Below are positions 35,601 through 57,800 of a stretch of DNA of 64,000 bases, piece by piece. Position 1 is the stretch's first letter. Every line of letters begins with the position of its first letter. Where the stretch lies: the NCBI RefSeq assembly GCF_052425735.1, contig NC_135759.1:35030001-35094000 (forward strand), given 5' to 3'. The position numbers were made by a program, and so were the translations under genes. The DNA comes from Oculina patagonica (taxonomy: Eukaryota). The notes beneath the pieces were generated by a model that was not told the origin of the DNA, ran no database searches, and saw only the letters and a program-made list of their open reading frames with translations.

Positions 35601-38600
35601 TTCTATAATCTTGTATAACTCATCTTGACTCTGCTGTGTTATCAGAACACTTTCGGCCGACGTTATACAACCACTAAAAATAAAGTTGAGATCAAGGTTT
35701 ACAACATGATAAATATATATTTTTTTTAAAATGTCTACAGAAGTAGAAGTTTGTCACAACAATAACCTTATAGTTAAGGTTCTCTATCCTTATTACATAC
35801 CTACAAGCCAAGCAGTCATTTAGTGTTATCTGTGCTCTTTGAAGTTTGGTCCTCTCTCCACCCTTGAAGTAAAAGATAACAGTCAGGCAGGCCTTTCGAA
35901 TTTAGTGCTAATTTTCAAACATAAAAAACCTTGTGCACATAAAAAAATGTTCTCCAACCATATAAAACCTTCCTCGGAGCCCCAGGGGCAGTTAATCCCG
36001 TTGTCCCGATAAGTTGCCCATTGCCCCCACTAACTGCCCCTGGGTCTCCGAGGATGTATAAAAACAGGCACCATTTTCTCTGATTTTTAGTTCTTAGCTT
36101 CTTTTGTCAGGAGGGGTTGCCTACAGTTGCCAATAATCAACAAGTGAATCAAATTAACATTTAAACTTTGAAAAATTCAAAACCTGGGCACTTTCTTTGT
36201 GTAGCAGACTATCACCTCTGTCAGTTGGGTAATAATGGAATTATAATTAGGTTCTCTGTCAGGCTATGGGTAGTTTATACTTGCTTCATTTTTTATCAAA
36301 TAATTGCAGGTCTATTTTCTTTTCAAGAAGTTGGTTTTTAAAGATTCCAAAACCGTCCACTGATAAATATTTTACATTGTAAGAAATAAGTGTTAGGGAA
36401 AGTTATTGCAGGACCACTTTATATTTATCTTCCATAATAAATAAATCTAGTAAATAATAAAGATGGTAAATTTTAAGCTCGGTGATAAATAATGAAGAAA
36501 TTGTTCAACATGACACGAGCGTGGGACAAAGAAAAAATCTGAGTCCCCGACGGGAATCGAACTCATGGCCTCCCAGATACCGGTTGGGCGCTCTAACCAA
36601 CTGAGCTACGAGAGACTCGTTGAGAGCTGGGCCATTTTACTAGGTTGATATGTGACACGCGTCCTGCATACTGCTAGGATCAGCAATGTCGAAATCATCA
36701 AGTCAGTGTCGAAATCATCAATTAAAATCATCTAGTAATCAAAGTCTCTTCGAGATACCGACTTTTTTTGCATGAAGTATGAGTCGAAGGTTTATCCTGT
36801 GCATTGTTCTTCGAACTTATCATTACGGTTGCTTTGTAGTTTAGTTTAACAATTTCCTATCTTCGCGGAGGAAATGCAGCCATATAATTTTGTCAAAAAT
36901 GGCTCGTCCGCGCCGGGTATTTATACACATATTCCTCAACATTACACAAATAAACAGTGCAAATTTCACCGAGATCTGACAATTCTATACTTTAAAATTG
37001 CAAGGACCTTTCGAGGCAGTCGATTACGGCAGCGAAATTAACAAATGAAACAGCAAAATATGCGTTCGACGCTTTGTTTTTGTGACGCCATATTTGAATT
37101 GTTATAGGTAGACCGCTGTTCAATGTGTTCAAGGCCGTATCGTTACGATTGCTCCACGAAAGAGCACGAAAAAAATACGGATATTTCCGACTACTGTCGG
37201 AGAAAACATTGCGTAAACAAATCGATACACTCAAGCTGCGTTTTTTCTGACTCGTCCCCAGTCGTCTTCATATAGCACGCGGCAATCTCTCCCTCCGCTG
37301 TATATTTGCCGCGTGCTGTATGAAGACGACTGGGGACGAGTCAGGCGTTTTTTCGCTCCCCGCCCCCACCCTCTTGCTTCTTCTGTTTTGTGCTGCGTCC
37401 AGGTCTCTCGCCGATCTCACCAAGCGCTCATCGATCGAAAAACACGAAAAATAGAGGGCTGTGGACAGTCTATGCGAGGGTCGGATATCAAGACAGCTTC
37501 TTCGTGGGCTTCAAAGAAGGATTAAACAAAAGCCATATATATACAGTGAATGCTATCGAATTATATTTGAAGATGAAATACGAAGGAATTTTGCTGTCTT
37601 TGACTGGAATTCCACTCGAACTGCGTAGATACGATCGCATGTTGTAAAGCCGATTCATGCAACATTGCTGTCAACGCGAGGTCACGTCCCTAACGACCTA
37701 GGCTGATGACGAAATAGAATGGGCGCTTGTAGCGACCAAATTTGGCCTAAAAAAGAAGCCTTAAAAGAAGCCCCCATCTCTTGCATTTGTTTTAACTTCA
37801 ATAATATCTTTGAAAAGAGCAAGTTTTTTGGTATGGTTTATTTTTGACGTTTGTAATTTTTAAACGATGTAAGTGCTAGTGGCTATTTATTTGTGTTTTA
37901 GTTACGCAATCCATTGTTTGTGCGACGCTTTTTATAGATCGCCTTTCAGACACACGTGCGTTGAGATAAGAAAGCTGACATGTCACTTTTAACATTGTTA
38001 TATAACGTTTGTAAATGTGACAAGTCACGTTTTTTCCACGAGATCGCGTGATCACCCACAGCGGAAAGTAATCCCTTGAGAAATTAAAATATTCCCTTGA
38101 GAAATTAAAAAAGTCCCTTGAGAGTAGACAAGAATGTTCCAAATTTTGCCCCACATAACTGCTATTCTCCTATTTTCGCTTGTAAACAAGCAAAAAAAGT
38201 CGCAAAAATGGTCCAGCTCTCAACGAGTCTCTCGTAGCTCAGTTGGTTAGAGCGCCCAACTGGTATCTGGGAGGCCATGGGTTCCCGTCGGGGACTCAGA
38301 TTTTTTCTTTGTCCCACGCTCGTGTCATGTTGAACAATTTCTTCATTAAATAAATCTATGTGCTCTTTTTACTACTGGTACATATCAAGGGATTCAGGGT
38401 TACCTCAGATAGCTGAACATAGCTTCCATCATCTTCAATCTTGATTTTTGCCAACTGTTCAGGATTATAAAAATAATAAATAAAAGTTTAAATATCATAT
38501 ACAGTGAAAACTCAATTTCTCAAGCCTCCATTTAAAGGGAACATAAAATCAAGAGTTCAATAAATCAGGGAACAGAATTACAGTGCTTGACTTAGTGAAG

Positions 38601-51800: not shown

Positions 51801-54800
51801 TTTTTGTGCTAACGGAAAACGCATGCTTACATTTTTTAAGATAAAAGTACTGATTGACATAATGCTACAAACTATGAATGAGACCGTAAATTTCTTGCGT
51901 AAAACTCAGTTTTTTGTTCTGGGTCACGTGACATTAGACGTGCACCGATGACGTCATCAACAGACTTGCAGTCGTACTCTAAAAGTCCTGTCTAAATTTG
52001 GTTAAATAAAAGCAGAGATAAATTAAGTTACAGCCAATTGAAATCTCCCTAGCAACGGCCCCAAAAGATACTGTAATGGGCCCTTAAATACAGTTAAAGT
52101 ATGCAACAGTTAAATGCAGCAGAATGAGCCAGTAGACTTACCAGTTATATGTGAATGTCTCTGGGTCAATTTCACTTCCTGTTGTCTTGATGGGAACTGG
52201 AGTAGGGGAAGGACTGGGCACTGGACCAGGTGATGGGCTGGAAGGTGGGACGTGGTGTGGTTGAACTGGTTCCTTGGGTTGTTGTGGAACAACTGTAACA
52301 AGAACACCAACACTTTATATTTAAGCTTGTTATATGACAAAAGAGAAGGCACATGCCCCCAAAAAGTTTGTCTTTATATAATTACACCGGCTTCAGTGTT
52401 ACGTGCATAGCTATATCTTTCTACATCCAACTTTCAACATCATCTTTCGAAGTGCGGTTGATATGATCAAAAACAATGCATACCAGTGTTGGTTTCAAGC
52501 AAATGAGCCCACAAGTTCAGAAGGTCATGCTAGTGGGCTGTGATTGGCAAATTTAGATCTGTCTTGTTTGTTTAGCACATCGAAAGATGGATGTTGATAG
52601 AAAGCCACTTTGCACGTAACACAGAAAGTAGGTGAAATTTCATGTTTGTTAATAAGAAAACACTTTCAGTATAGCGAATAACATCAACGTAATAACCTGG
52701 AGTTGGAACTGGTTGTGGTTTTTGTGTTGCTGGTATGGCAGTTGGTGTTCTCTTCTCCAAGATCTGCACCTCAGATAAGGCTTCTGGGCCAAAAGACTCT
52801 GCATCCAATGTCACCAAGCACACCAGAACATCTACAAATAAGGACACCTCTTCTGATAAGATTTGCTAAATCCTTAAGTTTAACAACAGTCTAGAACTCC
52901 TAACATCTTTGCAAATCAAACTGTAATGGCAAATCAAAAAGTGGTTCAAAAGTATCCCACGGCAAGTTTCAAAAGTTTGGGTAATTGTGAAGAACAGCTC
53001 CCGCTAACCGACTGTCGGTCGTCTGTCGGTCGTCTGTCGGCCGACAAACGGCCGACTGTCGGCCGTTTGTTGGCCGTCTGTCGGCCGTCTGTTGGCCGTT
53101 TGTCGGCCAACAGACGGTCGTCTGTCGGCCGACAACCTGCCGACAGGTTTTGGCTATGATGTCGGCCAACTGTCGGCCGACAGCCGGCCGACAGGCGGTG
53201 ATCTGTCGGTAAGGTGTCGGTAAGATGTCGGTAAGATGTCGGTAAGTTGTCGGTTATACGGTAACACTAACCTTTTTGTTTCTTTATGTTTTTCCTCCGT
53301 AAAGGACCCCAAAATTTATGAGAAATTGAAAGGAAAGGTATATATTCCTGAGTTTCGGTTATCACAGCCGAAAACTAGCTTCTGCGTTGCCGAAATCGAC
53401 CGGAGAATTTACGCGAACACAGCTACTCCATTTATCTCCGCCATATTGGATTGGTTAACTTAGTCTCATTCCCCCTCGGATTTTTATACAATTTTCGTTT
53501 CATGTGACGTATCGCAAGTATCTTTTCTTATGTTTCATGTAGTGTATTAATGTTTGTTATCATAAATTAACTTTATTGTTGGTCATTTACTTTTATAGAC
53601 TTGGTGGCTCCTAAAGGAGCCGTTTTTGACGAAGTGAAGTCAAACTTCACTCGTAGAAGCGCTGATCAAATTTCAGCGGCAGTAGTTTCCCCTCTCTTCG
53701 CATGTTTTCCATCACTGGAATGAACCTGCGAAGCCGTCTTCTGCACAGTGTCTCAAGTTGTTTCACGGAAGCCACTTGCTGGTCACGCAGGACAAGGTCT
53801 AACTCTCTGGCGTCGACCTTCTTAAGTTCGGCGATTGCAACAAAGTCTCTGACAGTGCTCCTGGGGCAGCTGGCCAGTCGAAAGGCGCACGCCATACTGC
53901 ATCGGTTTTCCATCATGACGTTCATGACCTGGTCATAGCGCTCGTGGATGCTGGCCAAGCTGTGGGTACTGACACGACTGCCATTTCTTTGCTGGTGCTG
54001 CTGCTGCTGTTCGGTGGGCGGCTCTTCTCTCTCCGGCTGGTCGTTCTGTTTCAGCTGTTCGACCTCCGCTCGTAGTTCGTGGATGACTTTCTTGGCGTTG
54101 ACGAGGCGCCGCTCGAGGTTTTTGACGACCTCGTCTTTCGTTCTTATGATGTTCGCTAGCTCCTCCGCCTCACTCTCCCTCTCCTGAAGCTCTTGTGCCA
54201 GTTCCTGGTTCTGCTCTTTCTGGTTCTGGAATGCCAGCCCGACCCTGTCATGGTCTTTCAGCAGGGCCTCGTACTTCTTTTGCAGTTCGTCATACGAGCG
54301 TTGAGGGTTGGATGACGCAGACTTCGCTGTCTTCTTTCTTTTCTGGGTTGGGCGCACCGTACACGAACACTGACGGTTGTCGCCGTTACAAACACCACAC
54401 CTTTTTTCACACTGTAACATGGCGTGGGCGCCGCCGCACACAGTACACTTTCGAGTTCTCTGAGACATTGCGAGTCGTAATGATAGAGACCGTTTAAACT
54501 CAAGGTTTTTTATACTCTGTTAAATGGATCAAGTAAACAATAACAATTTGTTGATTGGTTTATTAACAACGCATGTTATTGGTCGAGTTTGATTACTTGT
54601 GTCTATTTTGCATATGAATACTTTTCCATTACAATAAGTTACTTCTCATTGGTTAATTTCGATCCGATCAGAGGTTTTATAAAGGTTGTTGAAAGAGTGA
54701 ATAAACTCATTTCATCATGAACCACTTCGAGATACTTACCTTGATCCATAGTTGCCACGCAGTGCTCACGTTCCTTGTCGATCGTGGCTTACTGGCGGCT

Positions 54801-57800
54801 AGGCGTAGGTGCTCTTGTGGAAACGATATGGTTCTACGAAGTGATAATTCTGATGACGGATATCACTGGGAATGCCCAGTAAACCAATGCAGAAAACGAA
54901 GATCAATTCGCGCTGGTTCTTTTTTCCAAGATTCCAAGATTCCTCTGCATCGCTGGCTGTACATCATCTGGCTGTGGTCGATCGACGAATCCAACAAAAA
55001 AGTTTCCCTGCTAACCGGATTGTCACTCCGTACGGTGGTCAAGGTACTTGAAAGTCTCAGAGACATCTGCACCGAGAAAATTCTACAAGGAAACATTAAA
55101 CTGGGCGGCCGTGGAAAGACTGTAGAGATCGACGAATCCATGTTTGGCCACAAACGCAAGTACAACCGCGGGCGAATCGGTAGAGGCACCTGGGTCTTCG
55201 GCATGGTTGAAAGAGGCACTGGCAGAGCTCTTGCGTTCCGAGTACCCAACAGAACAAGAGAAACTCTGGTAACTGGACTGGTACAGCAATTCGTCGAGCC
55301 TGGAACGCTGATAATTTCTGACAAGTTTTCACCATACTTCAACCTGAACAGTATCGGCTACGTCCACCTCATGGTTAACCATTCTGAGAACTTTGTTGAC
55401 CCTTACACTGGAGCCCACTCGAACACGATTGAAGGAGTATGGAGTCAGATTAAAAGGAAACTGAAGGCGATGAACGGCACTCAGAGAGAGAGAATTCCTG
55501 GATACCTGGATGAGTTCAACTGGCGAAAATGTTTCCCAGGCGATCCTTTCGACAACGTGTTAGCTGGCATTGCTGAGTTCTATCCTCCAAACTAAGTTCA
55601 CTTAGTTTGATGAAAAAAAAACGGCTCCTTTAGGAGCCACCAAATAAATGAAAGTCTTGACCAACGTGTGTGATATGTTTGTTGTTAACGGGAATAAGGG
55701 TGGCACGCGTCTAAATCAATTATCACAGCACGCGCTAAATCAATTATCAAATTACACTGTATTGCGTATAGAAATTAGAAAAACGTAATTCAATAGGCGT
55801 CCGTGTAACATTTCCTTTTTTACATATAAATTCTGAAGAGAAATGAAACTATTTACGCTGCAACCTGCAATGCAAACAGAGAAAAAAGTTAAAAGGTAAA
55901 CATTATTTACTCTTACATGACATACATGTACCATGAAGGGGTCGCAAAGGATTCTAGGGCGACTTCAGCGAGTGCGTGTGTGGAGAAGTTTTTGCACTGT
56001 TTTGGCCTGAGTTTTGGATAAAATCATCTTCGAACGTGATTTCATTGCTTGCCTTATGCACTTAAAGCTACGTAGGTGATAGATTTATAAAAGATTGAAG
56101 TTTGTATAAAAGAAAATCTTGACGAGGAGTCGATTTGTTTTGTAGTAAGTACCGTAGTACAATGAAATACAATGTTTGTAAGTCCTATCTGTTTTAATCG
56201 CTTTCTGCGTCGGGCTTACTTCTGTGTTTACTGCTCAGTTTTACAGTAAAATGTCTGTTTTGGGAAGCTGTCGGTAACCTGTCGGTGGGCTGTCGGTGCC
56301 CTGTCGGTAGTGTGTTGGTAACCTGTCGGCCGACAGTCGACCGACAGTCGGTTAGCGGGAGCTGTTCTTCACAATCACCAAAGTTTGGATACAAATGAGC
56401 AATTCCAGTATGTCAAGATATAAACAAGTAATGTGTGTTTTGCACCATTTCAGTTGATATAATCAACCTTTTTATTACATACCAATACTGTGATGAACCT
56501 CTGCAATGTGATCTGAGGTGACTTGGCCAACTCCTGACAGATTGTACAGTGATTCCAATGAAGACAGTACCAACTAAAACAAAGGACAAGTTCTCTAACA
56601 TGGAACATTGTACAACAAAGGCAAACTAATACTTGCTGAACAAAATCGACATAGCAAGGTAGTGATGTGGAGAGCAACAACCACTGTTCCCCTCCCCCCT
56701 CACACCCTAAAATACAGCATTACTAGTACAGTCAACTCTCGCCTTGCGGCCCCCGCTTTCGGCCCCCTTTCGGCCTTTCCCCGGTTTTACTTGCCTTCCC
56801 CGGTCCTAGTAGATCCTTAATTACCTGAACATCACTGACAATTAGTACTTTGATGAGTGACTTGTATGCTTCAGGTTCCAGGCCGGATTCTATGACTTCA
56901 TCATTTCCTTCTAGAGTGCACAGCTTGCCCAACACATCCATGGCTGATAACAGCACAGAAAAAAGAGAACATTAGAGCTTGAATAAAAAGACATAAGCAC
57001 CAGAGAAACTGTCCTTACCTTAAACTGCTTGAAACCATAAATGTGCTCACGTGGTGTATAGTGTAAAATTAAGTTTCCTTTCGGCAGGTTAATATTTTAA
57101 TTCTCCGAAGAGGTAGGTCTGAGATAATTTTTAGCAGAACATTTGTGGTGCACAATACAGAGATCCACATACACGTAATGAGTCTGGTTGGTTTACCGTA
57201 TTTATTTGAATAAACGCTGCAGGGTTTATTAAATTTTTCGTGATTCAAGTGCGGCGTTTATTCGAGGGCGGTGTTTATTTAAACTCGATTTATTTCTTGC
57301 AAACAATAGCATTGTTACTGAACATTTGAACTTTAAAAAACAGAAACATGTAGTGCTTGTTTCCAAAATCATTTTCAAAATCTTAAAACATTGTTACAAT
57401 CAAGGAAAATTATTATTTTAGGCTTGCTCAAACTTGATAGTAACTGCATTTGCTTATTGAGTCTATTATTCAAAGTAAATGCCACATCGCGATGCGAAGT
57501 TTATTTGAGGGTTCCCCCGGCACTTTATTTATATTTCTGCTCTAAAATGCGGCATTTATGTTGAGCGAGGTGTTTAATCGAATAAGTATGGTAATTAAAG
57601 TAATTACTAATCAGAAGCAACCCAAATCTGAAGCTGCATTAACAGGCAAGAACGTTTGTCTCAAATCTCTATCATCTACCTTGAAAGTGAAGGATGTTAG
57701 GTTTCCGAAGATAGCTGTCTAGTTTCTCAGACCACAGATTACTTTGAATATGAATTATGCTCTATTTCAACTAACCATTGATGACATGATAACGATCTTT

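Follow-up and report, generated by a model that had tools for sequence, protein, structure and literature searches.

Structure and gene content of the element

The DNA analysed here (hereafter the window) is a stretch of 64,000 nucleotides from the stony coral Oculina patagonica (assembly GCF_052425735.1, contig NC_135759.1, positions 35,030,001 to 35,094,000 of the forward strand). At window positions 52980-56379 it contains a Merlin DNA transposon of 3400 bp with two genes, a transposase gene and a second gene for a CCDC106-like protein, both of which end in signals of the type found at the 3' ends of replication-dependent histone genes. The transposon is bordered by a target-site duplication, an identical 8-mer (AAAGTTTG) immediately outside both ends (52972-52979 and, as a perfect copy, 56380-56387). 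Its terminal inverted repeats (left: 52980-53056, + strand, beginning GGTAATTGTG; right: 56303-56379, - strand, beginning GGTGATTGTG) each measure about 80 nt, with a complementarity of 83%, and both start with GG. The terminal 25 nt were found with 0 and 1 mismatches at the two ends and nowhere else in the window. Merlin elements are characterized by an IS1595-type DDE domain, a target duplication of 8 or 9 bp and inverted repeats that start with 5'-GG and span 24-462 bp (PMC8101967), and all three features are present here (a DDE_Tnp_IS1595 domain, an 8-bp duplication and GG-starting inverted repeats). The element is apparently an intact, recently inserted and autonomous two-gene Merlin of stony corals.

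The left inverted repeat continues into arrays of CTGTCGG-type subterminal repeats that extend to about position 53250. Dense short repeats of the CTGTCGG(C/T)CGAC type occupy 53004-53250 and 56240-56350, with many nested palindromes inside both ends, and these arrays may be bound by the transposase or by the second protein. The same arrays produced the microRNA-precursor-like Rfam matches in the window, which were discarded as spurious.

The transposase gene (54717-55595, + strand) is an intronless open reading frame (ORF) of 292 amino acids (aa), whose residues 135-270 match the Pfam family DDE_Tnp_IS1595 (PF12762; 96.9 bits, E 1.5e-27). It has 951 homologues, the closest of them in Stylophora, Oculina, Acropora, Montipora and Pocillopora. 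One cluster built at 90% identity (the cluster of P0006) unites the transposases of Acropora millepora, A. muricata, Montipora capricornis and Pocillopora verrucosa; since this cluster spans deeply separated coral lineages, it suggests that the element either spread horizontally or is under unusually strong constraint.

The second gene (53647-54468, - strand) is an uninterrupted ORF, likewise intronless, and in its 273-aa product a CCHC zinc knuckle and a basic stretch are combined with a long coiled coil and a helical C-terminal domain. Every named sequence among its 173 homologues comes from a stony coral, and the closest is an O. patagonica protein sharing 99% identity. The C-terminal domain is confidently predicted to be all-helical (AlphaFold pLDDT 80). 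Pfam CCDC106 was matched by 10 of 24 members of the second-gene family (one of them above the gathering score), and the domain appears to be a divergent relative of CCDC106. Sequence and fold searches of the PDB returned no significant relative of the protein, and the candidates that surfaced (coiled-coil noise and a LEAFY-like helical match) were not significant. In the deepest lineage of the family (L078), the second gene (2697-3188, - strand) codes for 163 aa and the coiled coil is absent.

Histone-type signals at the 3' ends of both genes

A sequence-only reading of the window had pointed to the same hairpin element behind both intronless ORFs, and this was borne out. The 20-mer GGCTCCTTTAGGAGCCACCA occurs exactly twice in the 64 kb (55623-55642, + strand, and 53602-53621, - strand), with no occurrence expected by chance, and one copy lies behind each gene in the sense orientation. 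The stem starts 27 nt past the stop codon of the transposase gene and 25 nt past that of the second gene. Both sequences fold as isolated hairpins with a 6-bp stem and a 4-nt loop, located at 55623-55638 (+ strand; full signal 55615-55668) for the transposase gene and at 53606-53621 (- strand, GGCTCC-TTTA-GGAGCC; full signal 53575-53629) for the second gene. The Rfam model of histone 3' ends (Histone3, RF00032), which that reading had named as a check, recognized both hairpins in a local search: the signal of the second gene (53582-53626, - strand) scored 35.7 bits (E 6e-8), over the gathering score of 34, and that of the transposase gene (55618-55659, + strand) scored 33.4 bits (E 4e-7), which is 0.6 below it.

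A purine-rich stretch with TGACCAAC follows both hairpins, and it was found, together with the AATAAA hexamers, at the positions previously reported. Behind the stem-loop of the transposase gene, AATAAA (55643-55648, + strand) overlaps ACCAAATAAA and is kept in nearly all copies of the element; the hairpin of real H1 genes is followed by the same ACCAAATAAAG. It is followed by a sequence resembling the histone downstream element (AAAGTCTTGACCAAC, 55651-55665, + strand), in which AAAGTC is invariant in 21 copies. In the second gene, the sequence resembling the downstream element (AAAAGTAAATGACCAAC, 53576-53596, - strand) is kept in all lineages, and AATAAA (53572-53577, - strand) lies just past it, in the same CCAATAAA arrangement as in real H4 and H3 genes.

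Comparison with histone genes

A scan of a collection of prokaryote genomes for the exact 19-mer of the hairpin returned 11 contigs, five of which hold eukaryotic sequence mis-binned in metagenome-assembled genomes (MAGs). The remaining six have neither an A-rich flank nor a downstream element, fit the approximately 4 chance matches calculated for the collection and were dismissed. No match to the 19-mer was found in viral contigs. Two of the eukaryotic sources contain histone clusters. One contig (CBDCEV010000104.1, to which both L092 and L099 belong) has a 5.5-kb tandem repeat coding H1, H2B, H2A, H4 and H3, and another (JANQEW010000015.1, L097) carries H3, H1, H2B and the start of H2A. The H1 genes of these clusters are backed by Pfam, and their closest named relatives are anthozoan H1s (47-60% identity); to judge by their sequences, the clusters are cnidarian-like and come from organisms other than O. 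patagonica. The cnidarian-like contigs (L092/L099, L097, L094 and L095) had been deposited inside bacterial MAGs assigned to Hyphomicrobiales, Rhodospirillales, Flavobacteriaceae and an unclassified bin, i.e. they represent bin contamination.

The H3 and H1 genes of both clusters end in exactly GGCTCC-TTTA-GGAGCC-ACC, identical to the transposon hairpin, and the H2B genes, as well as H2A and H4 of L092, have GGCTCT-TTTA-GGAGCC. The cluster hairpins have an ACAAAC-like 5' flank and, on the 3' side, ACCAAAT(AAA) and then, past a spacer that varies, AAAAGTCAATGRCCAAY. The distance from stop codon to stem is 22-37 nt in these histone genes, compared with 25 and 27 nt in the transposon and 21-32 nt in its family, and the Histone3 model gave the true histone ends of L092 and L097 28.6-38.9 bits, a range that includes the scores of the transposon. 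AATAAA stands right after the hairpin in the H1 genes and after the downstream element in H3 and H4. The sequence-only reading had entered two reservations, namely the C-G pair at the top of the stem and the nearby AATAAA; both also occur in the cnidarian-like histone genes, and neither therefore marks the element off from these.

Two models built from histone sequence alone were applied to the transposons. The first (R1), for which 8 histone 3' ends (hairpin plus 32 nt) served as the sole training set, matched every transposon 3' end over its full length with 45-71 bits (64.4 for the second gene and 61.7 for the transposase gene of the window), and its sole other matches in 360 kb were L094 and L095. 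Since R1 matches that end after the hairpin scored 37-40 bits, the downstream part adds 15-30 bits. The second (R2) is a covariance model trained only on histone sequence downstream of ACC, and 14 of its 15 matches in 237 kb lie directly behind transposon hairpins. Between 52000 and 57500, its best match was the downstream sequence of the second gene (53576-53596, - strand; 10.6 bits, E 0.007), followed by that of the transposase gene (55642-55665, + strand; 7.6 bits, E 0.07). Taken together, the results of both models show that the element bears the whole bipartite histone processing signal and not the hairpin alone.

The two other R1 matches deserve a separate description. In L095 (926-1377, + strand) there is a small HIRAN-domain-like gene (Pfam E 3e-4) with in-frame stops, followed by the same hairpin and downstream element; this 3' signal scored 60.6 bits with the histone-trained model, so histone 3' signals occur behind at least one further gene of a cnidarian-like genome that does not code for a histone. 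In L094 (500-615, + strand) the hairpin and downstream element stand right behind a CCGACAGG-type repeat resembling the Merlin subterminal repeats, with no transposase near; L094 may be an internally deleted, non-autonomous derivative.

Conservation across the transposon family

Copies of the family were gathered blind to the hairpin, with the two proteins as queries, from one Stylophora pistillata locus, several ENA coral assemblies, and JGI, Tara and Logan contigs. In approximately 40 copies from at least 7 lineages, whose transposases share 53-92% identity, both genes are followed by the 22-mer AACGGCTCCTTTAGGAGCCACC in unaltered or almost unaltered form. Wherever the 3' flank is present and neither deleted nor rearranged, AAC-GGCTCC-TTTA-GGAGCC-ACC, or a version with 1-2 changes, is found 21-32 nt past each stop codon, even in the most divergent lineage (L078, transposase 53% identical). 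The hairpin is lost in three flanks, on the transposase side of L017 and L019 and on the second-gene side of L002.

Alignments of the 3' regions (21 sequences for the transposase side and 16 for the second-gene side) contain two invariant islands: one is the hairpin together with its flanks, the other an AAAGT(C) core approximately 12-14 nt past the stem. The untranslated region (UTR) ahead of the hairpin, the spacer and everything further downstream vary. AAAGT(C) keeps a near-constant distance from the hairpin despite the variable spacer sequence. In the same lineages, mean identity at 4-fold degenerate sites is only 36%, i.e. these sites are saturated, and the invariance of the signals against this background indicates purifying selection rather than recent shared ancestry. 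On the evidence of these alignments, the hairpin and the downstream element are maintained by selection across the family.

Five changes in the two alignments break the stem, and four of them fall in copies that are damaged elsewhere (the transposase is frameshifted or fragmented in L016, L021 and L055, and the second gene is truncated in L008). In the fifth copy, L010, the transposase aligns over its full length (stop codons unchecked). A test of conservation and covariation among related elements, also suggested by the sequence-only reading, succeeded for the position and the sequence of the hairpin. Covariation was thin because the sequence scarcely varies, and amounted to a double compensatory change in L003 (GGTTCC/GGAACC) and two further changes compatible with U-G pairing.

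In the transposase tree, the hairpin-bearing copies form one clade (support 100/99); L087, whose contig stops before the hairpin, was counted as hairpin-bearing by family alone. The nearest hairpin-less Merlins on the tree are L080 and L081 (from the same ENA accession series) and L025, none of which has the second gene either; the stop codon of L081 is followed by an ordinary AATAAA. A hairpin-like sequence was noted as well in a distant Merlin (L027, 33% identity), where CAAAC-GGTCCT-TTTC-ATGACC-ACCAA stands 26 nt past the stop codon (1991-2036, + strand). This hairpin looks more canonical and could be a second case, independent or older; it has one mismatch, scored only 22.8 bits with Rfam and was not counted. 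Overall, four independent lines, namely Rfam calls, family conservation, real histone clusters and histone-only models, uphold the proposal that both Merlin genes have histone-type 3' ends.

Promoter region

The two genes are divergent and are separated by a bidirectional promoter region of 248 bp (54469-54716), in which the order of motifs is kept across lineages. On the + strand it contains TTTATA (54509-54514), GGATC (54526-54530), three copies of ATTGG, the complement of CCAAT (54554-54558, 54578-54582 and 54648-54652), an octamer-like TTTTGCAT (54606-54613), GATCC (54661-54665) and TTTATAAA (54676-54683). Read from the second gene towards the transposase gene, the order is TATA, GGATC, two to three ATTGG, the octamer-like (A)TTTGCATATGAATAC, ATTGG, 8 nt, GATCC and TATAAA. 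The octamer-like motif is an exact ATTTGCAT in several lineages, and TATAAA lies approximately 35 nt ahead of the transposase ATG.

Between the H2B and H2A genes of the histone clusters, the motifs follow a similar order. In the 421 kb of collected sequence, 32 copies of the composite ATTGG-N8-GATCC were counted, compared with 0.8 expected, and these are confined to the proximal promoters of the transposons and the H2A promoters of L092, L099 and L097, with one chance bacterial match besides. At the level of sequence motifs, the promoter of the element shares with the histone H2A promoters a module in which TATA comes after ATTGG-N8-GATCC.

Interpretation and alternative explanations

Both genes show the sequence features of a histone-type 3' end: the stem, loop and flanks, a position within a short 3' UTR, and a purine-rich downstream element at a fixed distance. 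Replication-dependent histone genes code for core or linker histones, and the products here are a transposase and a CCDC106-like protein; thus, by its sequence signals the element would work like a histone gene pair, yet it is no histone gene. We consider it probable that each gene sits in a complete cnidarian-type, replication-dependent histone expression cassette, from which we infer S-phase, non-polyadenylated expression. By analogy with histone genes, such S-phase-coupled expression is likely for both transposon genes. The cassette may have been captured from a histone pair or assembled piecemeal. A more far-reaching version of this reading is put forward tentatively, with slightly more doubt than belief: the whole regulatory shell of a divergent histone pair (promoter module, stem-loop, downstream element and back-up poly(A) site) would have been taken over, the mRNAs would be processed by SLBP and U7 and be present in S phase only, and histone mimicry would perhaps be a wider habit of cnidarian selfish genes, as suggested by the same signals in the unrelated HIRAN-like gene of L095.

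In the histone pathway, SLBP binds the hairpin, the U7 small nuclear ribonucleoprotein (snRNP) binds the downstream element, the transcript is cut a few nucleotides past the stem, and synthesis and stability of the mRNA are limited to S phase. On the transposon pre-mRNAs, SLBP and the U7 snRNP would bind the hairpin and the downstream element in the same way, and cleavage a few nucleotides past the stem would yield non-polyadenylated mRNAs which, like histone mRNAs, would be synthesized and remain stable during S phase alone and might be stockpiled in oocytes and embryos. Such expression would confine the transposase to proliferating cells with replicating DNA, where excision from replicated DNA followed by sister-templated repair would raise the copy number of the element, and the proliferating cells of cnidarians would be those of the stem and germ lineages, which are relevant to inheritance. 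The sequence-only reading had proposed similar consequences (timing in S phase or the germline, a gain in copy number and an mRNA hidden from poly(A) selection), and these are plausible. In the cnidarian Hydractinia, replication-dependent histone genes are S-phase-specific (PMC5011920). Two Logan contigs end past the stem where mature histone mRNAs end, L082 by 3 nt (at 1136) and L086 by 1 nt (at 1796), and none of the other approximately 90 contigs ends at the hairpin; as RNA-level support, these ends are suggestive only.

Several observations weigh against histone-type expression. L082 and L086 also contain promoter or antisense sequence, and they may be DNA contigs merely broken at the hairpin. 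No U7 snRNA was found, either with Rfam in the window and the histone loci or with a pattern search of the 421 kb of collected sequence, in which two pattern matches were attributed to chance. The histone clusters used for comparison are cnidarian-like only and do not come from O. patagonica, and the covariation of the hairpin is minimal. Alignment of whole promoters with histone intergenic regions was not significant: local alignments of nine transposon intergenic regions with H2B-H2A and H4-H3 gave a mean z of 0.4-1.9 relative to shuffled sequences (1.3-1.9 for H2B-H2A), and for this reason a shared promoter module is claimed and not homology. AATAAA follows both signals, as it does in the real H1, H3 and H4 genes, so polyadenylation or dual processing at these sites is possible. 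Finally, the reading is built on sequence, from which its RNA and protein side is predicted.

The hexamers lead to an alternative in which the signals act in 3' end formation or mRNA stability without restriction to S phase; for example, the mRNAs could be mostly polyadenylated at the adjoining AATAAA, with the hairpin having a general function in translation or stability or acting as a back-up terminator. AATAAA is indeed conserved right past the hairpin on the transposase side and past the downstream element on the second-gene side, and some invertebrate histone genes fall back on downstream poly(A) sites when hairpin processing fails. However, real replication-type histone clusters have AATAAA at the same positions, which therefore do not distinguish the element from histone genes, and the downstream element, needed only for U7-type cleavage, is kept at a fixed distance. 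We regard expression without S-phase restriction as unlikely, though worth keeping in view.

Two further explanations would deny the signals any role in histone-type processing. DNA transposons do capture host fragments, and the signals are identical to host-type ones, so the hairpin and the downstream element might be inert relics of a histone gene fragment once picked up. Such relics would hardly be expected behind both genes, in the sense orientation and at a histone-like distance from the stop codon, nor would they have stayed invariant across lineages with saturated synonymous sites while the adjoining spacers and UTRs diverged, with most disruptive mutations falling in copies that have other damage; an origin as relics is very improbable. 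Still harder to credit is the notion that the palindrome acts on DNA, as a site for the transposase or the accessory protein or as a cruciform in transposition, and resembles a histone hairpin by coincidence. Other inverted repeats are abundant near the ends of the element, but the hairpins are strand-specific for each gene and lie approximately 600 and 700 bp from the ends, outside the repeat arrays. Moreover, the likeness covers the unpaired A-rich 5' flank, the U-rich loop, ACCA and the non-palindromic downstream element, and the signal is detected by histone-only models with E down to 1e-12. A complete histone-type cassette on each gene remains the reading that we prefer.

Additional features of the transposon mRNAs and of the window

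Besides the histone-type stem-loops, each transposon mRNA has a predicted hairpin that encloses its stop codon, which sits in the 5' arm in both cases. The hairpin around the transposase TAA (55588-55609, + strand) has a fold z of -6.4, and that around the second-gene TGA (53629-53654, - strand) a z of -5.1 in the minimum-free-energy fold. For the transposase-side hairpin, 93% of the alignment cells are paired and 4 pairs are changed on both sides, compared with 1.2 in shuffled alignments. Comparable stop-enclosing hairpins of different sequence occur in other lineages too, and none was present in the one real histone 3' UTR that was folded (an H3).

The flanking ORFs within 4 kb of the element have no Pfam match. 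Three tRNA-like matches were recorded elsewhere in the window (36546-36612, - strand; 38231-38292, + strand; 1612-1684, + strand). Two of them are nearly identical and lie on opposite strands about 1.7 kb apart, and one has no T-loop; the matches may represent repeats derived from tRNAs and not genes.

Significance and comparison with known systems

To our knowledge, hardly any genes other than those for replication-dependent histones have 3' ends with a histone stem-loop. Full-text searches of the available literature combining transposons with the stem-loop, SLBP or the hairpin sequence turned up no description of histone stem-loops on transposon genes, in agreement with the sequence-only reading, which knew of none for a DNA transposon. 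In the present family of mobile elements, two genes that do not code for histones bear the complete signal, and strong selection maintains it there. Should it function as in histone genes, the element would provide a clear natural example of a transposon whose expression is coupled to S phase via a host RNA-processing pathway, and the old idea that copies are gained by transposing during replication would become directly testable. Coral biologists would gain a compact S-phase-specific expression cassette, and poly(A)-selected RNA-seq would under-report such elements, their transcripts being systematically missed. In addition, the consensus obtained for the cnidarian-type histone downstream element predicts a U7 5' end complementary to AAAGTCAATGRCCAA, the U7 5' end of cnidarians being still poorly known.

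The element resembles metazoan replication-dependent histone genes in its intronless divergent pair of genes, compact TATA/CCAAT promoter and short 3' UTRs, as well as in the 6-bp/4-nt hairpin with an A-rich 5' flank, ACCA and a downstream element at a fixed distance, which are near-identical to the ends of cnidarian-like H3 and H1 genes. It differs from them in coding for a transposase and a CCDC106-like protein, in being a mobile unit with inverted repeats and a target duplication, and in the extra hairpin over each stop codon; furthermore, histone-type processing is here a prediction from sequence.

With the Merlin / IS1595-IS1016 superfamily (Feschotte 2004, via PMC8101967) the element shares a DDE_Tnp_IS1595 transposase of approximately 290 aa, GG-terminal repeats and an 8-bp duplication. 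Merlins have been described as single-gene elements, and a survey from 2021 reported only one extra ORF, which was judged spurious (PMC8101967). In contrast to the Merlins described so far, the clade presented here is distinguished by a second gene that is conserved, by a bidirectional promoter and by 3' ends of histone type, and the absence of the second gene from the nearest hairpin-less Merlins sampled (L079-L081 and L025) likewise separates these from the hairpin-bearing clade.

PIF/Harbinger elements are cut-and-paste transposons that encode a transposase and a separate DNA-binding accessory protein with a Myb/SANT domain. The two-gene cut-and-paste layout, the small accessory protein and its helical, possibly DNA-binding C-terminal domain are reminiscent of these elements, but the transposases belong to unrelated superfamilies, and the accessory gene of the coral element is CCDC106-like with a CCHC knuckle instead of Myb/SANT.

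Other transposons limit their activity in time or in tissue: Ac/Ds transposes just after replication, IS10 uses hemimethylation and the P-element uses germline splicing. The presumed outcome is the same in the coral element, i.e. a transposase limited to the cells or the window of the cell cycle in which transposition is profitable. Whereas Ac/Ds, IS10 and the P-element depend on DNA methylation state, splicing or protein control, the lever proposed for this Merlin is the host pathway of histone mRNA synthesis and decay.

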